Origin: Pocillopora damicornis
Taxonomy: Eukaryota
Direction of reading: 5' to 3'
Length of the DNA: 64,000 nucleotides
Assembly (NCBI RefSeq): GCF_003704095.1
Contig: NW_020844332.1
Coordinates: 186,001-250,000 of the forward strand
In this document: positions 3,312 to 64,000 of the stretch, one piece after another
Position numbering within the stretch: position 1 is the first letter of the stretch
How the letters are laid out: each line of letters starts with the position of its first letter
The notes under the pieces: generated by a model
What the model was told of the DNA's origin: nothing
The model's database searches: none
The model's input: the letters and a program-made list of their open reading frames with translations, nothing else
Translations under genes and position numbers: made by a program

Positions 3312-4538
3312 CTATTTCTTACACATCACTAGTTTTGCAAACGCATTCGCATAAAACTTGCTCATGGTGCCGTACAAAATGGGATGGAAGGCGCCTGGAA
3401 GACAATACAATAAAAACATGTATCTCCTGACGATTGAGTAATAAGGCCAAGTTGATGGCCTGCCGTTTACTTGCTCGTAGATAAACGAAACTTGGATCGG
3501 AATGTAGCAAATGATAAAACTAATAATGATCACGTATATCATTCTTAGGATATCCAGCTCTAGATCTGTCACGTTTGCATCTGTATGTTGCGAATGTTTC
3601 GCTCTCTTCGATGTTTGGCCTCGAGAAGAGCGATCATCCAAGGAACCTTGTCTCCAACAGCATCCATTCGTAATTTTCGCGATTAGATATTTCGCGTTTC
3701 CCTCGGATCCGTTCTTTTGCGACGATTTATGAACAATTTCCAGTCTTTGAAGATGGATACACACCTGTTCATCTGTTTGTAGCTGTGTTCCGTCCTCTGT
3801 GGAATCACTTTTGCGCGCGGCAGCAGCCCTAGCCATGTGTCTCTTCAGTCTCAGAGCAACAGCACCGTACGATATGACGATTATGAGATATGGAACAATA
3901 TAGCTTAGAAAGAGACGAACAATCGAGTAACGGCTGTGCGTTGGTGCATGGATAGTTGTATCGCCTGGGAACAAAGCTACACAAAAGTGACTTGTTCCAT
4001 ACTTAGTAACACTATGCACGACAGCAGATGGTGCGACAACTGTCAAGGCTGCGCTCCACAGCAGACTCAACACTAAAAATACTTTTCTCTTTGGCAGTGG
4101 CCCTAATTGACCGCGATATGTCCCAATTACTCGGTACCTTCGTGCTGCGATCAAAGCCAGAGTGTAAGTCACCACTAACGTGGCCGTCATTTGCACCGGA
4201 AACACAAGCTTGCATGCAGCTTCACCGAAAGGCCACGCTTCCATCCAATCGTAGACAAAGTAGAATGGAAAACACAGCGAACTGATCATTTCCGCGGCAG
4301 CCAGATTGGTGACCAGATAGTAAGAGAAAGGCAGTTGATGGTGAGACAACAAGAACATGGCTCTGCAGACCACAGCGTTTCCTACAACACTCGCCAGCGT
4401 GATAAGCACCAATACAAAAAGACGGAAAAAACTTGAGAGCGATGGCTCAGCGATGTAAGGATAAACACTCTGGGCGACTGAATCGTTGGCTGTAGAATTG
4501 AATGCAGCTGTAGAATTGAATGTGGCTGTAGAGTTCAT
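3312..4538 (-). CDS. Intronless class A (rhodopsin-like) GPCR, peptide-receptor-like
   Basis: Single ORF with 7 hydrophobic segments, N-glycosylation repeats (NST/NDS) at the N-terminus, TM1 GN, TM2 NLAAAE, WPFG..C, TM3 end ARRY (DRY position), TM6 CYIP, TM7 HPILY. First ATG is at 4538; the ORF track start at 4559 is GTG. Confidence 0.9.
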   Translation of the reverse strand: MNSTATFNSTAAFNSTANDSVAQSVYPYIAEPSLSSFFRLFVLVLITLASVVGNAVVCRAMFLLSHHQLPFSYYLVTNLAAAEMISSLCFPFYFVYDWMEAWPFGEAACKLVFPVQMTATLVVTYTLALIAARRYRVIGTYRGQLGPLPKRKVFLVLSLLWSAALTVVAPSAVVHSVTKYGTSHFCVALFPGDTTIHAPTHSRYSIVRLFLSYIVPYLIIVISYGAVALRLKRHMARAAAARKSDSTEDGTQLQTDEQVCIHLQRLEIVHKSSQKNGSEGNAKYLIAKITNGCCWRQGSLDDRSSRGQTSKRAKHSQHTDANVTDLELDILRMIYVIIISFIICYIPIQVSFIYEQVNGRPSTWPYYSIVRRYMFLLYCLPGAFHPILYGTMSKFYANAFAKLVMCKK

Positions 4539-7500
4539 TTTGAGATGTTCTGTTGACACCTAGTCGTCGCGAAAATAACTCTGAAGAACAATCTAGCGCT
4601 GAATATTGATNNNNNNNNNNNNNNNNNNNNNNNNNNNNNNNNNNNNNNNNNNNNNNNNNNNNNNNNNNNNNNNNNNNNNNNNNNNNNNNNNNNNNNNNNN
4701 NNNNNNNNNNACCTAGTCGTCGCGAAAATAACTCTGAAGAACAATCTAGCGCTGAATATTGATAGCGCTGTTATTGACCTCTCGATTAACCGACCTCTGA
4801 AAACTGGATTGTGCTGATCAGCGAACGTCGGTTTAATTAGGTCGATACGCTCTGTCAGGCTGGATAGGATAACACCAGGAGGTTCCGAAATAAGTCACCG
4901 CTGGTTCACATTTGTCATTAAGTCCTCGAATTTGGACCCGTCTCTGAAAACACTCCGGTCGTAAAAATTTCCCCGCATCACGGCCCACGCTACCGGGATA
5001 TTTTATCACGCGTTGACCTGTGTACCTAAATGATTGTGGCCGACCAACCTTCCGCACGAAATAAGATTCTTTAAATAACTACCATTTAGAAACCTTTCCA
5101 CCTTTTTTTTTGTTTCTTTTTTTTGGGGTTTCATATAGGTTAAACCATCTGATGAAAAAGTAATTTCCAATTCAAAGTGATCGAGCTTGACTTTAGGGTG
5201 AATATTTTATTTCATTTAACCACAAAACATCATAACTACATATATATATCGAAACTGACATTTGGTTATTAACAATTATTTCTGCTTCTAATTGCGATTT
5301 TACACATCTAGATACTCGCTTTGAAATTGCCTTGAAATGAGCCTAAGTAATACTGGTTATCTTCATACATAAATCGATATCAGTCTCATGTTTTTTTGTT
5401 TGTTTCAGAGGAGGATTCGTGACTGGAATCGTGCGGGATCTCAAAATGCAACACTAGTAAATTTGTGTGATGTAAAATTTTCAGATACAAGTCTTGTGTT
5501 AGGCAATCAAAGCGTGCAGGAAGATTTTCAAGCTATTAGATACAGAACACTTCATTTGCATAACAACGCAGCTGACTCGACGGAACAACAGCTACTCACC
5601 GTAAAAACATCCCTACTTAAAATTTACTTTATAACTCTTTCAGAAATCTTTGAAGAGTATTGAAAGCTAACAACCCTAAAATCGAATGAACAAGTGGCGT
5701 TTTCATAAATCCAATCTTTTTTTTTGTGGAATTAAAAAAAACTCGATATTACTTCAGCCACTAAATTTTATTTTTATGCAGTCAAGACGAAGAGTTTGGT
5801 GCATTATTTCTCAATGTAAGTGAAATGGCCCGTTTCATTTGCTTAAGACAATTACCATGCTTCACAGTTTGTGCGGAAAGTTGACTTATTAAAATATGCC
5901 ACAATATTCTATGCAAATATGACAATTTATCAATTAGTTGGAGAATTAATATACCATTTTAGGTACTCCCAGCAAGACATTGTCGCTTACCGTATATCAT
6001 TAGCAAAAGTTATGATTTTTTAAACAAAAGACAAGTCGATGTTGCTCGTTTTGTGTTTTACATCAATTTTTGAGAGAGCATAAACGAGGCACGAAACAAA
6101 GATACTAACCATTGTTTTGTACAGAAGTTGCAGTAAATTGCTTACTCGTTTTAGATCTAAAAACAATATGCTCACTGCTGAAAGAGTAATAGAATTCCTC
6201 CTGTAGACTTTTGCAACTGTTATTCCATCATGCCAAAGGATAGTTTTAATATTAATGTTAGATTCATATTCTTTTGATTACCTATGCAAAATGTAGAGAG
6301 AACTAAGACAGAACAGGGAACTAAACAACTTTGCTTTCAACACATTTTTGTTCTTTAGGCCACAAATCTAACAGCAGCAGCACCCAAATTCAATGTGCAC
6401 AGTAGAGACATCCTCGATATATATCTCTCCATATCTAAACCATATATACAATTATCCTTACGAACACCTGTCTCGATGTAAATCAACAGTCAAATACATT
6501 TGGTTCTTTCTGTTACAAGTCGATAGGATTTGATCATATTCTCGCGCCAAAGTCGCAACGGCGTAATAAGAATGACAGTTGTCCTTGAAGTAAAGAAAAA
6601 GGCTTATGATTATCGTTGAAATTTGCTTGCTCTATTAATTGTTATGGCTTCGTATTTATATCATCATTGTCAGGTAATAAGGGGAAAAAAACATTGTAGG
6701 CGAGGTGGCCTCCAGAAAATATCCGACATCTACAAGAACATCTGTCAGCCTCCGCGCAACCACTTAAATCTGAAGGATTATAACCGCAATAGAGCTGACT
6801 ACAACCCTTGCTGAAACGTGATCGAGTTTCAGATTGCATCTTAGATAACAGGACGATTCCCACAGTCATCTTCGTTCTCTCTGTTTCCCCATTTCCCCAA
6901 GGTCAATAAATTGGCACATTTACGTCTCTTTAACGAAACTCAGTCTCAAAGGCATACAGGTCAAAAAAAATATGTGTTACAAGGAAATGTGAGAAAAAGT
7001 AAGTTTTATAAAATCTCGTCCATTGAAATAAGAAGATCGACTAATCGCTTAAAAATCAAAGTCGCAGGGAGGGACCAGGGTTTTCTGAAAGGAACAGATG
7101 ACGTGCAAATTTGACCGAAGTAAAACAATTACGTAAGTGTGTCAGTTCTGATGATTTACGGTCCAGCCATTTATAACTTCCTAGGAAATAATCTTTGCAT
7201 GAGTGTTTATTTCACGAAGATGGACGCACTTGCCACGGGAAGCATGCGCGCCCGCCAGGGAACTATGAGGCGTCTCGAAGAAACACTTGATTAAGGAAAA
7301 TATTTGCTGATCAGAACCTGCATGAACCAGAATACCCAAAATACCCGACATGCAAGGACAAAAGCATGTTGACAGTATGTTCTTTACGTGGGACACCAGC
7401 ATGCAAAAAGTAAAGTAATTCATTTTAGCGCAAACCGTTTCCATAACCTTATCAAAAATACAGCAGCTGAAATCTTGACATCAAATTACGTTGTCGGAAA

Positions 7501-52614: not shown

Positions 52615-54271
52615 GGATTGGTTATTTAAACTACAACTTTGAATATGATTGGCTTATTGAACTATCTGATAACAAACTGTCCGATAACAACTTGGCAAGT
52701 GAATTAGTAGAAAATAGGAGTTTTTTTAAATCAATCAAAGTCAAGGAATTGTAATTTTTATGATTAAAAGTAGGAGTCTGTAGTGATTCCAGAACCTTAG
52801 GTACCCATGCACCACTATTTTACCCTTTTCATTGGTTGAAACTTCTGTGAAGTTTTGTTTTTTAAGAGGTCCAAATGATAATGTTAAGGGCTACAACCCA
52901 TCACGTTTTTTAGTCCCCAGCCATCTAAATATTCATTTGTTGTAGTTAAAGATTTAGGGCTCACTTCTGGGTAATTTTTTTCCCTTCTTCCTTTCTGGAT
53001 TATCTTCTCATTGAATTGATTAACATGTACCTTCTCCCTATAATAATATCCATACATTGTTCAGCAGACAGGTAAAGAGAATACTCAAACTTATATGGTA
53101 TAAGTTGTTGTCTTGATCTAACTCCAAATTCTGGTAACCAATTTACAAGGAATTGTCTAACAGCTAGAGGGAGAATTGAAAATTGGATCCCAGGTGTTGG
53201 AGGGTTACAATAATTAATTTTTTTTACTTTGTACCATTGTCACCTTCTCCACCATCACAATAATAGGTTCTGGTATGCCTATCTATCATTGTGAAAAGCA
53301 CAAATACATTGTGAATAATCTAGGGAGAAAGTTGAAAAATTTATTAAGAAGACAAAATCCCTCTAGGGAAAAGATATCTACATTTGATTTAAAATGCTTC
53401 CCAACGTTTGACATAATTGGCATGGAATCTATTTCAGGAGCTACTCGCACAAAAGATGCAAAGGAATTGATTCATGCTCGTCAGAGTGTAGTTGTTCATG
53501 CAAAGGCTTTTGGTCTACAAGCCATTGATATGGTTTATATTAATTTCAAAGGTAAGAAACATCTGGTGTTAGAGAAAGATGTTCTTTTGTTTTGTTATAA
53601 GCATGGCACAAAGAAAAAATTTTGAGACCCCTTGAGGAATTGAAACTCAAACCTTTGGATTCTGAGCTCTGATGCTCTACCACCGAGCCACTGAGACTCT
53701 ATGGTGAGCAAGGCCATTACAAACTTCATATATGACGTGTGTCCTGCATACTGCTAGGATCAGCAATGTAGATAGCATCATGTTTTGTAAATATAATTTT
53801 TTGAGATATTTCTATTTCTTTACGGAGCTCAAAACTGACCATCTTTCTTATTCTATTTACGTGTGGCGGTTGTTTGCATCCTTGTTCCACTAGGAAGAAC
53901 GTGTTCATTATCATACCGTAAACACTTTAATAAGGCCCTCAGGGGCATTGTTTCAGAAAGTTGATTGAGAGGAGGGAAAAAAGGGGTTGTTAAAAAGAGG
54001 ACACCTATGAGGAACTTTAAACTGTAGAGAGGGGTCTATCAAGGGTAGGCTTATAAGAACAATGTTCTTAATATGTTTATAGCTGTTCAAGTTTGGAGAC
54101 CATATCAATGGTTATTCACTCACTAACTAAAGGCTTTTGAGAGGGAACATGTAAAGCAACTGTTTGAACAAAAGTGACAGCATTTGAAAATAGTCTTTCT
54201 TTTGCTTTTCTTTGCAGACCCTGAGGGTTTACAGGCACAAGCAGAGGAAGGTGCTAGGTTTGGTTACACTG
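50135..54271 (+). CDS. CLYBL: Citrate lyase beta-like / citramalyl-CoA lyase (mitochondrial), exons 1-5
   Basis: Exons 50135-50353 (basic leader, PRRSFLYIPG, VLDCEDGVA), 51016-51204 (CVRINS, VVPKVE), 51910-52096 (LVFGSDDF), 53438-53551 (AKAFGLQAIDMV), 54218-54271 (EEGARFGYT). Confidence 0.93.
52320..52770. repeat. Interspersed repeat with internal tandem units of about 30 bp (gattggtt..tttaaactacaactttgaat)
   Basis: 3-4 degenerate internal repeats at about 52555-52660. Confidence 0.5.
53590..53860 (-). mobile_element. Repeat containing a tRNA-like segment (SINE-like)
   Basis: Minus strand TGGCTCGGTGGTAGAGCATC...GAGTTTCAATTCCTC resembles Pol III A and B boxes but does not form a clean cloverleaf. 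Confidence 0.5.
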
Positions 54272-54971
54272 GTGAGTCTGTTTTTTGTCCTCATTTTTCT
54301 CTTTTGTTTCTGTCAGGACAATTGGTCTCTACTTTGAATTTGTCATGATAAATATAACTGCTCAAGTTTGATGAATCTAACTGTTTTGATTATTTAACCC
54401 TTTAACCCCTAAGAGTGATAGGCATCTAATTTCTTCCAACAGTGTCACCCCTAAACCAAACATTAGACTTATGAGAATAAAGGAAATGGTCACAAACTTA
54501 AAAAACTCTTGATTGTTAGACAAATTCTCATTGTAAGCACCAAAGGAAATGGGGAGAGATCAGTATGGAGAACTTGCATACTGATGTAAGGGTGAACAAA
54601 GTGTTCCTTGTTATGAAGAAAGGGGTAAGTTTCTAAAGAAACTNNNNNNNNNNNNNNNNNNNNNNNNNNNNNNNNNNNNNNNNNNNNNNNNNNNNNNNNN
54701 NNNNNNNNNNNNNNNNNNNNNNNNNNNNNNNNNNNNNNNNNNNCTCCAGTTTTTTATATGCATTTTATCTTTACCTTTCTTTTCTATCAATTTAATCGCA
54801 GTTCCTTGTCTTTTTATCCGCTGGCGACGCTGATTCACTATCCCTACTTTCTATGCTCGAGGTACTGCTGACTTGGTTTTTACGTTTATTGACCTCAGCC
54901 ATAAAAAGACAACGACCGAAAACTATATATCACTCCACATCGGCTACGGAACTTTCTTGGGCACGTCTTAC

Positions 54972-55520
54972 TCAGACGCTGTCATGCCCAGAATCACTAA
55001 CTGGTTTGCCAAGTTTCCAATCAAGGTAACACACGTAGACAAGGACTTCTTCCAAGATACCAAAATCAGTTCCACCATCTGCCATCACTGATATGAAGTT
55101 GCTCTCTCTCAATTTCACTCCAGTCTCCTCTTTTAGTATGTCACTTATGTGGTGTAAAAATTCAGTACAGGCACTTCTTGCGGTGTATGTTTCGCCGAGG
55201 TCAGCTCCATTGAGGTTTTGAAGAGCACAGAATGTTTCATAATCATCAAAAGGCCTTTCAATCGCTACAATGGTAAATGCTGTCAAAATCTTCTTTTCCA
55301 ATTTAGGATCCTTGGCACTAATCAATTTGTTTAGAGATTTGACAAATGGTCTTTCCTGTGGCTTTTAGTGTGCCTTCAGAGATTCAACACAGCTTGCATG
55401 TGCTTGACTTTTATCATGCTTCTTTAGAGTTTCCATCTTCAATATTCTGCTTCCACTCTTCTTAGAAATGTCATTAGTTGATGATGACTGCGAATGCTGG
55501 GAACACACACTACGGTACAT
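54972..55520 (-). pseudogene. Decayed hAT transposase N-terminal part (TTF-type zinc finger plus DUF4371, ZNF862-like)
   Basis: One frame reads MYRSVCSQH...ETLKKHDKSQAH...AH*KPQ...AFTIVAIERPFDDYETFCALQNLNG...FISVMADGGTD...EEVLVYVCY. In-frame TAA at 55365-55367; similarity is lost shortly after the first catalytic Asp motif. Confidence 0.82.
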
Positions 55521-55530
55521 AGGTTAGACT

Positions 55531-56538
55531 TCACAGGTCCCATCTTAAGATAAGATGGGAGAATCTTCTTTCTTTGGTTTCTTTAATGAACTTGCCTTGC
55601 TTTGAAAACCAGTGTTTTAAACACCCTCTCTTTATGCCATTGTTGGTACCTTTGTCATCTGTTTTTGAAGTTTTCACTTTGGGTATCTCTCCAGCAACCT
55701 GAGGAGGCATTACTTTCTTCTTGAGGCTTCCCACTTGTGCCATCTGCTCAATCATGTTTTGACCTTTACCATTTCTTGTAATGGAGAACAGGGGAACAAA
55801 GTGATTTGGCTCAAACCACGCACCAGGTCTATCATCACTTCCTTCCCTTGTCCATAGCAAGAAAACAGTTTCTGATGAGAATTTTGCCATTCGAGGGTAG
55901 ATAATCCCATGCACAAAATCCCTTGTCCATGACGGGCAGTCAGGGTAGGAAAGGAATACTGGCCTAGCTAAAACAACAGTTAAAGCAGACACTTGGAAAT
56001 ATCCACTCCATTCTTTTGGCTTGCTGGCATTGCGTGCCTCTGAGAAGACAGCCAATTCCCTGTTTTGAGCACTGTCATGGAAAATGTCGTTGCTGCGTCT
56101 TGTTAGGCAGAGGGTAAATACTGTATTGGGATGGCAACAACCAGAAGGAAAATAAGTAAATTTGGGATGCTGTGCGTAGAAGCTGACATTGATGTCGAGT
56201 TCAAGAGCAACAAGTAATCGCCAAAGAATAGCATATGATTCATCACCCACTAAAGCAAATGATACCGCATTATATAAGCAGTTTCCGTTCCCAGTGGTCT
56301 TCACTGCTTTATAGATTTTGTCAGCAGAAGAAGGAAGGTCTTCAGGAATAAGAGCATTCAACAGTTTATCTTCTTCAAGACCCACATGGGAATTACATTC
56401 CAGGCTACGAATAAATTGTTTCTGGTTTTCGTACTTTCTCTCAAGAGTACTAAAGTATCCCCTAAACTCATCTTCCGGTTTTCCTTTTACTATCTGGCAG
56501 TCAAGAATCTCGTACAATGCACGAAGATCGTGGTCCAT
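55531..56538 (-). CDS. Vertnin-like OTU-family cysteine protease ORF inside the transposon
   Basis: 335-aa ORF with AVKTTGNGNCLYNAVSFALVGDES (Cys loop), EWSG..QVSALT.VL.RPV..SYP and PNHFVPL (His loop). Confidence 0.8.
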   Translation of the reverse strand: MDHDLRALYEILDCQIVKGKPEDEFRGYFSTLERKYENQKQFIRSLECNSHVGLEEDKLLNALIPEDLPSSADKIYKAVKTTGNGNCLYNAVSFALVGDESYAILWRLLVALELDINVSFYAQHPKFTYFPSGCCHPNTVFTLCLTRRSNDIFHDSAQNRELAVFSEARNASKPKEWSGYFQVSALTVVLARPVFLSYPDCPSWTRDFVHGIIYPRMAKFSSETVFLLWTREGSDDRPGAWFEPNHFVPLFSITRNGKGQNMIEQMAQVGSLKKKVMPPQVAGEIPKVKTSKTDDKGTNNGIKRGCLKHWFSKQGKFIKETKERRFSHLILRWDL

Positions 56539-56689
56539 CTCCTAAATACTCTTTTCTCACATCATTGGTGAACTACACGTGTATCATTGCACAGACTGAG
56601 GGAAAGATAAATCATGGTGGTTAAAAGTGAGAATTCTAGCATGGTGACATACGAAATCCGTCAAGTTTTCGCGCCAAAATGACACGATT

Positions 56690-58162
56690 AAAAAAACCTC
56701 ATTCAGAGATTTTGATTCATGCATGGACTTGAAAGTTTATCTAGCTCTCATTAACGAAAGTTACAGTGAATCGTGAAGCCTTCGTCATTGCAACTTACTA
56801 TTTGCAAGAAAGTTAAAATTTTCAGAAAGTAGACGAAACCATTGATAGGATGTTTAATTAAAAGTTGATTGCAAGTTTGTGCGACATCCAGCCAAGGAAA
56901 CCATTGCTGAATGACAATCTTTACTAATCCGTGACGTTTTGAAAGAGTAGTGTTGTATACTTCCTACAGTTCCAGGGAATTTGCAGAATTGCCAACAGTT
57001 TCATCTCTCTCGTTCAATATTCACTTCACTGGGCACAGGTGGCAAAGTTAGTTACTATATTTAGCAGTCACATACTCTGTTTTGGCGAACTTTTGATATC
57101 ATGAAATCCTGTTATAAATTAACCACACACATGTTAAAACCGCTAAGAAAATTTCTTTGAAGACCACTAAAATAGGTTTCGAAACAAAAGAGTTCTTATA
57201 TTGAAGTTTTATTTTCGTCAAATTTTGATCAAATGATTACAGTTGCAAGCAAGTTGCCAAATATGGTGCTGATAAACATCTTGCATGCCACGGATTAAGC
57301 TAATTAAATAAACACAAATTTGCATAAAGGACGGTTTCGTTTTATTAATCACACGCTCCACTATTGAAACTGTTGAAACAAAAATTAAATATAAGCATCA
57401 ACCACTTCAATTAAAAAAATTAGATCTTCAACACATGCTTGTGCAAAAATCGTAGTTTCCCACGGGCAAGGAAAAAACAATTTTTCGTGCTAAATCATGT
57501 GAAACAATATTACATAACACACGTGACAACTTTGAGTGTGAACAATTCTTGTTGTTGTCCTGCAAAATATTTTTTAGTTCTGCAAATGTCATCAAATTAG
57601 CAAGTAAAATCATAAAATGTTAGTTACAATCAGTTGCTCGCTTTATCGCGTCGTTCAATGGACAAGAAGCCTGGGCTATGTAATATATTAATAAATCAGA
57701 AGAGAAACCACTGAAGCGAAACAAGACCCATGACCTACTTAATGTACAAATCACACAGGCTATTGATTGCACTGTGCTTTCAGCGCTTTTGCTTTTCGGG
57801 CTAACAGGAGCCAGGGAGCATGATGGAGTTTCTTTTTGTTTTGTTCTGTTCCATTTCTATATGTTTGCTGGTTTCGTTNNNNNNNNNNNNNNNNNNNNNN
57901 NNNNNNNNNNNNNNNNNNNNNNNNNNNNNNNNNNNNNNNNNNNNNNNNNNNNNNNNNNNNNNNNNNNNNNNNNNNNNNTGCAATCAAGTTTTAATTAAAC
58001 ATCCTATCAATGGTTTCGTCTACTTTCTGAAATTTTAACTTTCTTGCAAATAGCAAGTTGCAATGACGAAGGCTTCCCGATTCACTGTAACTTTCTCTAA
58101 AGAGAGCTAGATAAACTTTGAAGTCCATGCATGAATCAAAATCTCTGAATAAGGATTTTTTT
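56690..58162. repeat. Inverted repeat pair of about 185 bp (56690-56873 and 57979-58162)
   Basis: The right copy is the reverse complement of the left with a few substitutions and abuts a gap. Confidence 0.9.
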
Positions 58163-58523
58163 ATTGTTAATTATTAACTGATTCAACTATAAAATGGATT
58201 ATTAATTAATTAATCAATTAATTATTTATTAATTAATCAATTCGGGCGACCAACCTGGAAGGCTGGGCGACCTACTTGTCATGGTTAGGCGCCCCTTGTT
58301 ATAGAGCACAGCCTTGCAGTGTCACTTGTATTTCTGAAGAGACCTTGCATATCACTGTGTCTACAAGGTAATCTGGATCTTAAAGCAGGAGGGAGGAAGG
58401 GTCCTGCAGAGCCCACTCAACATGTCCCTTTTTCTTGTCCACAAGGTGGGTCATATGCAGTTCTGGGACTCTCCTAAACCATGTCCTTGCATCAAGCCTG
58501 GCTCAAAAGCTATTATTTACTTT

Positions 58524-58849
58524 TTACTTTTTCTGTGTAGCTTCTGCCAATCGAAGAACATTCCTGGCTTGCTGAACTGTTGGCATGTCAATCATGTTGC
58601 CATGGAAATTAATGGCACCCTTTTTAAAGAGAAAAACAAGGAGATGAAATGAAGTTTCCAAAGTAAATTTTATACCTACTTAGCTTTCTTGCCTACTTTG
58701 CTTTACATCTCAGATCAAACTGACCTTTCCAACTCTTTCTTGTTCCTCAAAAGCATTTACCAGATCTCTTGCCCATTTAACCTTCTCTTCACTTGGTGAA
58801 AATGCCTTGTTAACAATTTCAATCTGTCCTGGGTGTATTATTTGTTTAC
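58524..58849 (-). CDS. CLYBL: CLYBL exons 6-7, on the opposite strand from exons 1-5
   Basis: 58725-58849 GKQIIHPGQIEIVNKAFSPSEEKVKWARDLVNAFEEQERVGK and 58524-58619 GAINFHGNMIDMPTVQQARNVLRLAEATQKK*. The phase-1 acceptor matches the exon 5 donor. Confidence 0.93.
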
Positions 58850-60405
58850 CTGTTTGCACCAAATGATACAAGAAAATGGTTTAACCCTTTAATTCCCAAG
58901 ATCTTATTTGTTAATTCTCCCTTCTAGCTGCCTCACATTTCCTTGTAAATTAGTTATAAGAACATGGTGCTAGATCAAGATAGCAGCNNNNNNNNNNNNN
59001 NNNNNNNNNNNNNNNNNNNNNNNNNNNNNNNNNNNNNNNNNNNNNNNNNNNNNNNNNNNNNNNNNNNNNNNNNNNNNNNNNNNNNNNAGACCAAATGTTA
59101 GTCGCCTGAGGCGACCGGGCGCCGCTAGAGCACAGCCTTGCACTGAGATTCAGAAAACTGTTAACACTTTTATGTCATTCTGGTAGATCAAATGAGTATT
59201 GACCTGTTGCAATAAAGTAAAGTAAACTGAAACAAACGTCTGAATCTACAAATTGTTGCTTTTCTGGGTTTTGTTTTCTTTCCCTTGGCTCACTCCTTGG
59301 CACACCTAGAGATTTTATTATCTGGGGGCATCTGCCTTAAAAGGAGCACAAACGTACAGGGCATATCTATTGAAGGGTCCAATTTCCTTAGTTCTGAGCT
59401 TGTCCGCTAAATGGAATGTCCATTAACTGCAGTGGGAATTGCATTCAAAATGTTACTCTTACCTTGATTTTACAGCTGAATGGGTACTTCTCAAAAACAT
59501 AGTTCATTGTATGTCATGTGGGTGCCTAGCAATTATGCAAGAAATTCATGTAAGGAAGAGAGAGTGTAACTTCTTTCCATGTCCTAATTTTCTAATTACT
59601 TACTCCTGGTTTAATCGAACACCTGCTACTCAGGCAACAGTTTTATTATATTTACATGGTCTTCCTCTGAGTCCTGTGAAATTACAGTGAAGTCCATTAA
59701 TGAAGAGTGTTGAGTAAATGAAAATATGAAGAATGTTAGATTCATTCTAGAAGCAGGTTAGTTATATAACTACTAATTTTAGAATGCTTTTAACCCTTTA
59801 ACTCCCATCAGTGACTGAGACAGAATTTCTCCTTACAATATCAACACAATATCAAGCAGACAAGTGATGAGAATTAAGATACATATCAATTAGGGGATTA
59901 TTAGTTGATCCAATACCAAATTCTCAAACCTAACATCATAAAAATTGTATGGTAGACAGTAAAGAGAACTGACTAATGAGATCTTGGGATCTTGGTTAAA
60001 ACATTATATGGCTAAGGTTCCTTTGACTTGAGAGCACTCTAGGTATTCTCCCTCAAGCAATGAAGTTCTAAAATCATTCAAGTTTTGCTGTCATCTCATT
60101 TCTGAAGTTGTTTCCCTCATTTCCATTTGGCCGAGATTTTATGAGATTGTATGTGTGTACACCTAACATTGGCAAAAACTCTGACTTAAAACCGGAGAGA
60201 AGTGCGGAAAAAAATAAAATGTTGAAATATTGGTGAACACCCGCCTTAAAGTAAGATGGAAGGTGGGACATACAGGTGTGTAAATAGCCCACTTTTTGCA
60301 TAAGTAACTTGCTTATGTTTGGTCTCTTATGGTCCTTGATAACAGTCAATTTCAAAGAACTTCACACATCCACTTCTGGTCAATAGATCAGTGCGGCAAT
60401 ATTTC

Positions 60406-61680
60406 CTAAGGCCGGACCACTGAGTGGGGCTCTACTGTATTTTTGCGTATTTTACCTCGGCATAGTACTCGGATTACATCTTTAAATGCCATTTTGAACT
60501 GCTTATTCAAGAATGCATATATGATAGGATTGCAGATTGTGTTTGAAAATGCCAGCCATGCTGCCACCAGAGGAAACGATGAAGAATCACTCGCATGCAG
60601 GTCTAGAGTTTCGAGGATGCTATACACAGCGAAAGGAAACCAACAAACTTTGAATGCCAGAATAGTCACCAACAATACTTTAACTAGCTTTTCTTGTTGA
60701 TTAAATCGTTTCTGCGTTTTGCCGAGCCGCACGATACCTGATTGTTCTGACGGAGTTGGAGAAATGACCCGAGATGTTTGGCTGTTGTTGTCCTCTATGA
60801 CTGTTGCGTCTTTAACGCTAAACGTTTCTACTGGAGCCAGTCCTGAAGATGTTGAAGGCGTTGTGCCTACTGCTCGCATATGCAACTTAAAGTTATGGAT
60901 TGTTCCTGTTTCGGCAATCAGTGTGCTTGCACCAGTCTGAATGCTAGAATCAGGAAAGTTAATTATTACCTCAGGCACTTTGCCAACTTGATCAAGGTTG
61001 GAACAGCTCAACTGACTATCGGTAGCACCACACCACCCTTTACTGGAGCGAAAATTCTTGTTATGCTTACGAACAAACTTCATAATCTTGTAGTAAAACA
61101 CTGTCATGAGGCACGAAGGTATACAAAATAGCGACACAAGTATTAATATACTGTAAGACATATGTTTTGACCAGTTCAGCGAGCACGTGGAAATACTAGA
61201 GTTGAAATAAAACTCGCCCCACCCAAACACAGGGGGAAGGGTGAAAAAGATACTTACACCCCATATGGCGCCCACCATACATTTTACCAATCTCCATAAT
61301 TCAAGCGTGGAGTATTTATAGTAAGAAGTGATGGTTTTATATCTGTACCAGCTGAAGCTAAACAAAGTCAACAAAGTCACGTTGGAGAGCAGAACTATGA
61401 CAAAAGCCTCCACTTGGCAGATAGCTTCCCCAAAAATCCAATTGTTATTACAGAGCACGGTGATGTAGGAAAGAGGTATGCAGATAAGACCTGCTGAAAT
61501 GTCCGTCACGGCTAAATTCAAGACAAATATATTGGCTGGCACACGCCGAATGACTTTTTTTGTCGCAACAGAGATGACAACAATAGAGTTGCCACCTAAA
61601 GCCACCAACGAAATAAATATCATTGGAATGGCTTTCCCAACAGAAGACCAAGTAACTGAAGGAGTTGAGGAGTCATTCAT
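60406..61680 (-). CDS. Intronless class A GPCR (aminergic/GPR161-like orphan)
   Basis: TM1 GGNS, TM2 NLAVTD, WIFG..C, WYRY at the DRY position, PPVFGWG, CWFP, NPIIY, helix 8 NKQFK.AF; long ICL3. First ATG at 61680. Confidence 0.92.
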   Translation of the reverse strand: MNDSSTPSVTWSSVGKAIPMIFISLVALGGNSIVVISVATKKVIRRVPANIFVLNLAVTDISAGLICIPLSYITVLCNNNWIFGEAICQVEAFVIVLLSNVTLLTLFSFSWYRYKTITSYYKYSTLELWRLVKCMVGAIWGVSIFFTLPPVFGWGEFYFNSSISTCSLNWSKHMSYSILILVSLFCIPSCLMTVFYYKIMKFVRKHNKNFRSSKGWCGATDSQLSCSNLDQVGKVPEVIINFPDSSIQTGASTLIAETGTIHNFKLHMRAVGTTPSTSSGLAPVETFSVKDATVIEDNNSQTSRVISPTPSEQSGIVRLGKTQKRFNQQEKLVKVLLVTILAFKVCWFPFAVYSILETLDLHASDSSSFPLVAAWLAFSNTICNPIIYAFLNKQFKMAFKDVIRVLCRGKIRKNTVEPHSVVRP

Positions 61681-64000
61681 AGTTTGGCTAAAGCACAATT
61701 TAGCTAAGTACTAAACTGCCTTAAATAAGCGCGCACTTTCGGTCGGGTTGTTTTTAACGAAAGGAGTCAATGTTTGAATAACAACTTCCGTCCGATGCTT
61801 GTTCACTAGGAAAAGGTCTTCAACCAAATATGACGAATTTCTTCAAACGGTCTTTCAGCGATTTGAAACCAACGTTTCACCAAGCGTAGGATCCTCCAGA
61901 CCTAGTTGGCTTGAAAATTTGAAAAGTGATAGCGAATAACTTGCTCCTTAAAAGTGTATTTGCGAGAATAACTTTTAAAGATCTTTCAAGTAGCTTGACT
62001 CACTGCAATGTCTGATTCTTTTGGCGGGTTTTCCTGAAGCTCATCGAGAACTTAATTCCATTTAGATGTGTACTCCTCTTACGGCTTTTTCATTCAATCT
62101 GAACAAATGTTGTTATTCTTTACCAGGTATTCTATCTTTTCTGGCGACCCCTGCTTTTAATTAAACGTCAAAATGTCAAGAAATGTTCCATTAGTAGACC
62201 AAAGTAATCTCCGCTCCATCATCAGTTTTTTCGTTTTTGTCAAATATTGAATGACTAGGAAAATAGTGCCTCAATAGAGCCACCTGTTTCCACTTTTACA
62301 TTGTACATCGGCGGCAAATTGGTTGTCAGTCCGATTCTTTCGGTGGTAGCGGAGTGACTGAAGCACTCAAAAATTGAACTTGACCCAAATAAAAGCTCAT
62401 GGGTTGGAAACGAGGAGAAAAACGTCCAGTTTTGACACTTCGTAGATCATACGAACGGCGTGTGCCCCTCTGGGAAGGGCTTAATCTCTCTACACCTGTA
62501 TTTACCTGAGGTTGTTGCCTGTCGGAGAACAGACGATTATATTTACCGTCTTTTTCTTCATTCTTTGGGAGTGTTTAATTAGAAAACTAAACGAAAAAGG
62601 CGTCTTTTCTTTCACCCTTTGATTCCCACGGGTGACCAAAACAGTGTTTCTCCTTACAATATCAATACAATATCAAGCAGATAAGTGATGGCAATAAATA
62701 AAAATATCAATTATAGGGGGTTGTTGGTTGATGCAATACCAAATTCACCGAACTAACAGCATATGAATTGTATGGTAGAAAGTAAGGAGAATTACTGACG
62801 AGATCTTTGAAGTGGAAGGCAGAGGGGGATGAGTGAGGGGTCAGTCCTTAGAAAGGCCTTTACACGTTGAGTTATTGTGGAAGGTGTAAGGAAAACTACA
62901 TATTTGAAAGGTTTTACGTGTTAAAAAAAGGTTTCAACCACAGTGAAGCGATTTAAAGCTTTTCACTGAGTTGAGCAGAGCACTTGTTTCTGGCTTTCTA
63001 AAGTCTAGTCACAGACCCTCCATTCTGTCCAGGGTCAGCATCGAGGGCGCGAGCGAAAATAGAGTTTCGGGGGATTTAATACTTTTATTTTCACCATTTA
63101 TGTAATTTTTCCTTTCTTTCTGGTTTTTTTTCATCTTATTTTGGACCTCTTGCGCTCGTTCTCGCTACCCCGCTCAGCAAAAACAAAAATAATGAACAGC
63201 AAGTAAGAAAACAAATATTTACAATGAAACACGGACTGGGAGGGACACCAGTCTCTTATTTGTCTTCAGACAAGTCACAGGGATACCAGGTGGATTGCTT
63301 TAGTTCTACTTAGGGGACGCCCTGTTAATCCTTTAACTTCTACGAATGACCAAGACTAAATTTCTCCTTACTACTTTGAAACAACATCAAGCAGGCGAGT
63401 GATGTAAATAAAGAAAAATATCAATTAGGGGATTATCAGTTGATCCGATACCAAATTCTCTAAAACAACATCAAAAGAATTATATAGCTTATAGTAAGGA
63501 GAATTACTATTGAGATCTTAGGAGTCAAACGGTTGATAGTGGGTGTAGGAACAAGTGCAACATTTTTTTCAAGCGAGTAAAGCCTCTACTTTCCTCAAGT
63601 TTAAAATATTCTTCCAACGAGTTGTGGAGGAAATAATGAGAAGCTATGATTTTTCTCTGTGATTGGATGAAAAAATTCACGCCCCACTTCCTCGACCAAT
63701 CAGATGCATACTATGCTTAACCTTTAACTCCCAAGATCTGATTGTAAATTCTCCCCTCTAGCTGCTACACATTTCCTTCTAAATTAGTTCTGAGAATTTG
63801 GTGTCAGATCAAGAAAATCAACTTCTACGCGATAAGTTCAAGTATTATCATTATCTGTTTGCAAGATAGTGTGAGGATATTATAGAAGAAGTTACCTCTC
63901 AATCACTTCTGGGTGTTAACGGGTTTAAGCCAGCTGTCGTTTTTACTTTGAATTCCTTCAAAAAATACTCGTTGTCACTGGGTGTTGAAATAATTACACA

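Follow-up and report, generated by a model that had tools for sequence, protein, structure and literature searches.

The 64,000-nucleotide window analysed here (Pocillopora damicornis, assembly GCF_003704095.1, contig NW_020844332.1, positions 186,001 to 250,000; coordinates below are those of the window) carries, on its minus strand, a 335-aa open reading frame (ORF) encoding an OTU-type cysteine protease domain, followed closely by a fragment of a hAT transposase. We conclude that the pair is very probably a dead, truncated copy of a low-copy coral hAT transposon of the ZNF862/C17orf113/Buster-like type, in which the transposase is fused to an OTU domain. In intact relatives a single, intronless ORF reads, in order, an A20/Cezanne-like OTU domain, a basic linker with the conserved motif KRGCLEQFGF, a TTF/C17orf113-type zinc finger, a DUF4371/RNase-H-like core and an hATC dimerisation domain.

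The OTU-hAT fusion in related copies and in the window

The genome searched was the 234-Mb assembly in 4,393 contigs. The OTU and hAT parts have the same order and strand in five loci (L012, L014, L015, L013 and L031), and the arrangement is repeated by 15 or more predicted proteins, some as little as about 30% identical. At L012, on contig C1122, terminal inverted repeats (TIRs) of the form CAAGGCTGTGCTCTA stand at both ends, each abutted by the 6-bp duplication GTAGAT. The OTU ORF of this copy (3820-4710) is 68% identical to that of the window, and in frame with it follow 4717-6498, with the zinc finger and core, and 6520-7170, with hATC (26.7 bits, cut-off 21.4); over its full length of about 1,117 codons this frame is broken by just two stops. 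The conserved linker motif KRGCL precedes the stop of the window ORF but comes after that of L012. L014 encodes an unbroken transposase of 779 aa, divided from its OTU ORF by one frameshift immediately behind CLEQFGF, and the first ORF of L015 covers 635 aa, from the OTU domain across the zinc finger to within the core. The OTU-transposase breaks are at different sites in the window copy, L012, L014 and L015, and are therefore independent decay events.

Unbroken versions of the fusion are found among the proteins. In the closest relatives, P0152 and P0215, the reading frame is continuous from the OTU domain to the zinc finger and the DUF4371-like region. The 1,096-aa protein P0171, whose cluster includes P0198 and P0199, has OTU at residues 84-195, the zinc finger at 428-481 and hATC at 985-1029. 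Three more intact fusions (P0175, P0177 and P0178; 1,122-1,167 aa) have a complete zinc finger (zf-C17orf113, 31.7-36.7 bits), and the P0175 cluster contains Porites lutea proteins that are named "zinc finger protein 862-like" at NCBI. P0235, a single ORF of 1,211 aa on a 4.1-kb contig, combines OTU with DUF4371 (82.6 bits) and hATC, and six relatives, P0243-P0249, which make up a distant group together with it, share this domain plan; P0015 (L013) is a further distant unbroken ORF with OTU, zinc finger and DUF4371. The hATC scores reach 30.3 bits in P0175, 39.3 in P0177 and 37.0 in P0235 (cut-off 21.4), and the RNase-H-like core of the relatives was assigned by matches to PF27073 and PF14291. 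Overall, the intact fused proteins measure 1,094-1,211 aa. That the long fused ORFs are chimeras of gene modelling or assembly is unlikely, since independent projects yielded contigs that carry them as single ORFs.

These comparisons indicate that the OTU-hAT fusion is real and a feature of a transposon family. Accidental adjacency, in which an OTU element or host fragment came to lie beside an unrelated hAT fragment or a host gene was captured in a single copy, is exceedingly improbable. The region is admittedly a patchwork of repeats and gaps, and the same OTU family is fused to DUF7869 in Mytilus and to LRAT in Dreissena; however, an accident of this kind is at odds with the recurrence of order and strand and with the continuous ORFs that span the junction. 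A preliminary description of this DNA had read the two parts as one ancestral ORF, and as a hAT lineage carrying its own OTU module. Both proposals are borne out by the one-frame locus on C1122, the unbroken P0152 and P0215 and the intact longer fusions, and the chance nesting of two elements, which the description had allowed for, is refuted by the linked loci and fused ORFs. It had suggested looking for uninterrupted copies between TIRs; unbroken fusions exist in relatives, and the TIR-bounded copy on C1122 has two stops.

TIRs of 15 bp and target-site duplications of 5-8 bp occur in the related copies, among which are also non-autonomous derivatives; two of these, L043 (1,239 bp) and L044 (903 bp, duplication TAGGC), retain both TIRs. 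The duplication of the element on contig C2822 is ATATCTAA, offset by 1 nt, and that of L015 would be GTTTCTGT. The classical hAT target-site duplication is 8 bp. Judged by these marks, the family appears to have moved.

The window ORF has both of the catalytic loops ascribed to it in the preliminary description, GNGNC(87)LY (Cys87 codon, 56278-56280) and PNH(246)FVPL (His246 codon, 55801-55803). Cys87 and His246 are near-invariant across 75 homologues and both are kept in all intact fusions. A family profile built from these 75 homologues and run against PDB matched OTUD1 (E 1.5e-7), OTUD7B, VCPIP1 and A20. The AlphaFold2 model of residues 1-270 has a mean predicted local distance difference test score (pLDDT) of 89.3 and a predicted template modelling score of 0.88, and the top Foldseek matches to it were all OTU domains; Cezanne/OTUD7B, A20, TRABID and VCPIP1 led the matches with probability 1.0 and E values of 5e-6 to 3e-5 (lowest 4.7e-6) over about 200-250 aligned columns. 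The fold check suggested earlier thus recovers an A20/Cezanne-type OTU fold, which is a variant of the papain fold, and the assignment of the ORF to the OTU domains stands. The reference assembly differs from 20/20 other contigs by two private amino acid changes in this ORF, R106W (56223) and A269V (55733), which are either real private variants or consensus errors.

The same-strand TTF zinc finger and DUF4371 remnant reported just downstream of the ORF were found as well. The remnant starts 10 nt downstream of the OTU ORF in a different frame and comprises the C-terminal half of a C17orf113/TTF-type zinc finger and an N-terminal DUF4371-like region; it shares 72.8% identity with P0171 (residues 427-606), an intact protein, and is 95.2% identical to L015 at the nucleotide level. 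Its zf-C17orf113 score of 24.5 bits (cut-off 29.5) comes from the C-terminal half of the finger only, a conserved zinc-finger Cys is changed to Arg, and one TAA stop (55365-55367) interrupts the frame. Pairwise alignment with L015 places a 2-nt deletion directly after KRGCL, at codon 309 (55612-55614) of the window ORF. Because of this deletion, the tail of the ORF, residues 309-335 (HWFSKQ...LILRWDL), reads as an out-of-frame linker, and not as the lead-in of the zinc finger for which it had been taken. A second deletion of about 220-240 nt, located by BLAST coordinates and the same alignment, took out the remaining linker along with the N-terminal half of the finger.

Similarity to all hAT relatives stops at 54993/54994, where the copy is cut off by a 5'-truncated long interspersed nuclear element (LINE); a Tara contig (L016) carries the LINE ORF on for 486 aa, with an RVT_1 match of 132 bits. 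The RNase-H-like core is not retained in the window copy, the kept part being the equivalent of P0171 427-606, and hATC (PF05699) is absent from it. With two deletions, a stop and a LINE truncation, the window copy presents itself as a dead, 3'-truncated and otherwise ordinary hAT element. Runs of N occupy 54644-54743, 57879-57978 and 58988-59087 of the window. The junction between OTU ORF and remnant lies within the ungapped 3.1-kb contig 54744-57878, and therefore no gap affects the core observation; moreover, the junction is reproduced by 20 independent Tara Pacific coral metagenome/Logan contigs at about 98-99% identity.

Selection on the OTU domain and its possible roles

Between subfamilies, the ratio of nonsynonymous to synonymous substitution rates (dN/dS) is 0.06-0.14 for the OTU domain, and these elements' transposase has values of 0.12-0.20; dS exceeds 1 in these comparisons, which makes the values rough, but both are far below 1. 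The OTU domain has thus evolved under purifying selection that is no weaker than that on the transposase. In a quick maximum-likelihood tree of the transposase part, the OTU-bearing elements form two strongly supported clades, with OTU-less mollusc ZNF862-like transposases falling between them (the OTU motif flag used on the tree missed P0244-P0249, which are OTU-positive by homology).

We propose that the OTU domain accompanies the transposase as an active deubiquitinase, or as a protease acting on a ubiquitin-like modifier. It would deubiquitinate the transposase itself, which would then be protected from the proteasome; alternatively, it would edit ubiquitin marks on chromatin or repair factors at the site of excision and integration. 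Such a function has long been suggested for the OTU and Ulp1 domains of Ginger1, Helentron and Mutator elements. The prediction of a complex between the OTU domain and the coral's own ubiquitin lends weak support to this role, with a score of 0.42 against 0.00 for the best control, a partner pLDDT of at least 82 and at least 60% of contacts shared by three runs. This score possibly reflects the model's memory of solved OTU-ubiquitin complexes and is little evidence.

Several points weigh against the explanation as a whole. The Pfam OTU score of the window ORF (PF02338, 22.2 bits) falls short of the curated cut-off of 23.3 bits, which is exceeded in the relatives L012 (24.2), P0171 (26.6) and P0198 (24.9). 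No intact copy of the family was found in this genome, where it is represented by C1122 with its two stops, the window copy and fragments on C790, C2590 and C1227. The tree requires that the OTU domain was either gained twice or lost several times, and it is compatible with a single old fusion followed by losses as well as with two separate fusions. We infer deubiquitinase activity and a benefit to the element solely from the modelled fold, the catalytic residues and selection. Finally, in a population sample the window ORF has 7 variable sites in 1,008 nt (3 synonymous and 4 nonsynonymous), as against 15 in 829 nt of neighbouring single-copy non-coding sequence (8/537 in the remnant and 7/292 in the proximal leader), a difference that could be residual constraint.

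Such counts speak for an alternative in which the 335-aa ORF was co-opted as a Pocillopora host deubiquitinase and kept by selection after the transposase had died. The 4 nonsynonymous sites compare with about 11-14 expected from the adjoining neutral sequence (rough Poisson p 0.002-0.02), the catalytic residues are intact, the same ORF with its frameshift tail is present in 20/20 Tara Pacific/Logan contigs and its cluster has 152 members. This cluster, however, contains frameshifted alleles: the frame of P0212 is lost after residue 229, before the catalytic His, and that of P0205 after residue 287. Six different amino acid variants occur at a very low overall divergence, and in the comparison with the nearest relative, L015, dN/dS is 0.44 for the OTU domain and 0.33 for the dead remnant, so that the former is under no greater constraint. 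Candidate selection specific to the ORF was accordingly set aside, the suggestive population counts being contradicted by the frameshift alleles and the remnant comparison. The frequency of stops in the remnant, one in 530 nt, would give about 1.9 in the ORF, from which the chance of an open frame is estimated at about 0.15; an open frame of 1 kb is unsurprising because the copy is young, and we suggest that youth, not use by the host, would have kept it open.

The public annotation also models the ORF, as pdam_00013925. The 90% cluster of the window ORF includes RMX51010.1, "hypothetical protein pdam_00013925 [Pocillopora damicornis]", a 449-aa gene model in which the 335-aa ORF is spliced to the DUF4371-like remnant. 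The annotated intron merely skips the broken zinc finger, and the model is probably an annotation artefact. Co-option, with which the preliminary description had found the intact OTU part compatible, is thus quite unlikely on the evidence of the frameshifted alleles and of an OTU domain no more constrained than the dead remnant. If true, it would be a live example of a transposon-borne deubiquitinase becoming a host gene, a route that has been proposed for the transposon-derived VTD deubiquitinases (PMC9741609).

It is also unlikely that the OTU domain is mainly a self-processing protease that releases free transposase, in the manner of arterivirus PLP2. Its N-terminal position, with a long low-complexity linker after it, would suit such a role, as would the precedent of some viral OTU-like proteases that combine self-processing with deubiquitination. 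On inspection, however, the linkers of the aligned fusions contain no conserved LxGG-like site, only SGE or SGG, the nearest solved folds are all isopeptidases, and the predicted docking of coral ubiquitin, weak as it is, points the same way.

Relation to known transposon-protease fusions

For some fifteen years, fusions of transposases with ubiquitin or SUMO proteases have been on record in Ginger1, Helentron and Mutator elements. In Ginger1, including that of Hydra, the transposase ORF is fused to OTU (pfam02338) or Ulp1, and a role for ubiquitin/SUMO cleavage in transposition has been proposed (PMC2836005). The coral family resembles Ginger1 as a cut-and-paste element whose transposase ORF includes an OTU domain; it differs in having a hAT transposase and an N-terminal OTU domain, whereas Ginger1 has a Gypsy-integrase-like transposase and a C-terminal one. 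Helentrons encode OTU as an additional ORF (PMC4067079). The VTD domains of Helitrons are active deubiquitinases, for which protection of the transposition proteins from degradation has been proposed, while activity tests on transposon OTU domains were unreported as of 2022 (PMC9741609). The likeness to Helentrons and Helitrons lies in a transposon-borne OTU domain with conserved catalytic residues in many animals, cnidarians among them, but those are rolling-circle elements. Mutator-like elements carry Ulp1/SENP domains (cited in PMC2836005), proteases for a ubiquitin-like modifier, and are, like the coral family, cut-and-paste transposons with a cysteine protease domain; their protease, however, is C48 and not OTU, and their transposase is of another superfamily.

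On the transposase side, matches to zf-C17orf113, DUF4371, FAM200-ZBED5_RNase-like and Dimer_Tnp_hAT align the family with proteins of the ZNF862/C17orf113/FAM200/ZBED5 (Buster-like) type. Vertebrate genes of this type are usually viewed as domesticated and not mobile. The mollusc ZNF862-type relatives that were recovered (511-789 aa) differ from the coral family in that none has an OTU domain. On the protease side, A20, Cezanne, TRABID and VCPIP1 are the best structural matches and have the Cys-loop motif TGxGNC in common with it; they are nevertheless only 15-21% identical, with template modelling scores of 0.4-0.47, and are cellular signalling enzymes without a transposase.

These nearest folds also replace the label 'vertnin-like' that had been given to the protease. 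A vertnin cluster appears in the atlas as a distant look-alike (score 0.82, rank 15) and is a lead only, the comparison having been made by atlas score and domain descriptions. Vertnin (VRTN) is reported to be a papain-fold protein that resembles OTU domains but is inactive (PMC10318531). It has HTH_Tnp_1, HTH_23 and Vertnin_mid domains and no catalytic residues, in contrast to the window family, which has the catalytic Cys and His and hAT domains and is without HTH, and a specific link to vertnin is not supported.

No description of an OTU-hAT fusion was found in the literature, Repbase and Dfam lying outside that coverage; NCBI already lists such fusion proteins as "zinc finger protein 862-like". 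The combination of the hAT superfamily with an N-terminal OTU domain is a new form of a known transposon-protease fusion. Among cut-and-paste superfamilies, hAT is one of those best equipped with biochemical and structural tools, and a hAT lineage that keeps a conserved OTU domain under selection at the N-terminus of a single, intronless ORF of 1.1-1.2 thousand amino acids lends itself well to study. Such elements could reveal whether deubiquitination shields the transposase, tunes break repair or counters a ubiquitin-dependent host defence. The origin or retention of this solution in a further superfamily strengthens the view of ubiquitin signalling as a general point of conflict between transposons and their animal hosts.

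The same OTU family, with 1,024 representatives at E values up to 0.001, has other fusion partners in other animals. P0034 from Mytilus coruscus joins OTU to DUF7869, P0009 from Dreissena polymorpha joins three tandem OTU domains to LRAT, and P0139 from Ciona intestinalis is another member of the family. P0068, P0085 and P0143 are long proteins with a C-terminal OTU copy and no other recognisable domain. Weak OTU matches elsewhere in the coral genome, on C3832 and C2711, had no informative ORFs adjoining them.

Element limits, scaffold structure and neighbouring features

The features around the fusion are collected in Table 1; across the N gaps, they were compared by the coordinates of flanking matches. 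The limits first assigned to the element, 54972-59145, could not be upheld, since the two TIRs, 58302-58316 and 59126-59140, point the same way and are cut off from the ORF contig by gaps.

Table 1. Features of the OTU-hAT copy and of the adjoining sequence in the window
Feature	Position	Strand	Details
Start of the LINE (5'-truncated non-LTR retrotransposon) by which the hAT copy is truncated	54744-54993	minus	ORF from 54838 into the N gap 54644-54743
hAT transposase remnant, 176 codons	54994-55523	minus	single frame, matches P0171 residues 427-606
335-aa OTU ORF	55531-56538	minus	about 50-262 OTU domain, 263-308 linker, 309-335 frameshifted tail
Scar of the deletion of about 220-240 nt	55539-55557	minus	from BLAST coordinates and pairwise alignment with L015
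Leader, about 1.4 kb between 5' TIR and ATG	56539-57878	minus	same leader in L015
3' end of a separate, internally deleted non-autonomous relative	57979-58321	plus	leader fragment, 3' subterminal sequence and 3' TIR 58302-58316
5' TIR (59126-59140) and 5' subterminal sequence	59088-59140	minus	92-98% identity to the 5' ends of L012, L014, L015 and L016-19

In L015, the distance from TIR to ATG is 1,415 nt. The proximal 340 nt or so of the window leader are single copy, and the distal leader (about 56880-57878) is a repeat found at about 90% identity in at least four to six other loci, non-autonomous copies included. All other assemblies diverge from the window by 3-9% in the distal leader and by 0-1% below about 56880; in them the ORF carries one of two different 5' flanks, neither matching that of the window. 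Given the multi-copy distal leader, the conflicting flanks, the gaps and the joins induced by repeats, the placement of the ORF contig in this scaffold is uncertain, and neither a TIR nor a target-site duplication is securely assigned to the OTU copy.

Across the N gap from the leader, positions 57979-58987 form a 1,009-bp contig between two N gaps, with a leader fragment, the 3' subterminal region, the 3' TIR and then flank in this order. The leader fragment (57979-58167) is an inverted duplicate of 56684-56873, giving a 190-nt inverted repeat. Four Tara contigs are without this island, and there a 5' TIR lies about 64-68 nt from the equivalent of window position 57878. Pieces of CLYBL/citrate-lyase-beta-like exons were seen on opposite strands at 53275-53622 (plus) and 58710-58871 (minus); they match HpcH_HpaI at 27.5 bits and C-C_Bond_Lyase at 21.2 bits, the latter under its cut-off. 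When the island is flipped, CACTG abuts both TIRs and the exon piece at 58710-58871 becomes co-directional with that at 53275-53622, so the contig is probably inverted in the scaffold. The flank at the window 5' TIR differs from the flanks joined to the OTU copy in other assemblies, and the TIRs at 58302 and 59126 most probably mark the two ends of a distinct non-autonomous copy; the 59126 TIR is not demonstrably part of the OTU copy. The window locus sits in a mis-scaffolded repeat patch.

Two other arrangements were considered and dropped. A miniature inverted-repeat transposable element (MITE) nested in the 5' untranslated region was suggested by the 190-nt inverted repeat; the leader, however, is native to the subfamily, as seen in L015, and the other arm lies on a contig of its own, which is probably inverted. 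Assignment of the ORF contig to C2822 was withdrawn: the presence of both TIRs around the gap on C2822 fits a non-autonomous copy, short-read joins in the distal leader are unreliable, and other Tara contigs attach a different flank.

The C2822 element (C2822:12310-12766; L060 7152-7608) belongs to the family and has both TIRs and the ATATCTAA duplication around a 100-N gap. Over 7.4 kb the 5' flank of this element matches the Tara scaffold L048 at 100% identity, and L048 continues into the OTU ORF; either C2822 is the true locus of the ORF or L048 is chimeric in the repeated leader. Two family copies, at window position 59088 and at L012 3678, enter a 100-N gap at the same subterminal point, after CTAACATTTGG, where other assemblies have about 64-72 nt. 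This break point probably reflects a structure at which the short-read assembly stopped.

At 58880-58987 lies a SINE- or MITE-like repeat (SINE, short interspersed nuclear element) of about 107 bp, of which the genome has at least 40 copies at 88-94% identity and which shares the motif TTTAACCCTTTAAC with window positions 54393-54414 and 59789-59810. Beside the repeat patch, 60406-61698 on the minus strand is an intact, intronless ORF of 430 aa with the look of a rhodopsin-type G-protein-coupled receptor.

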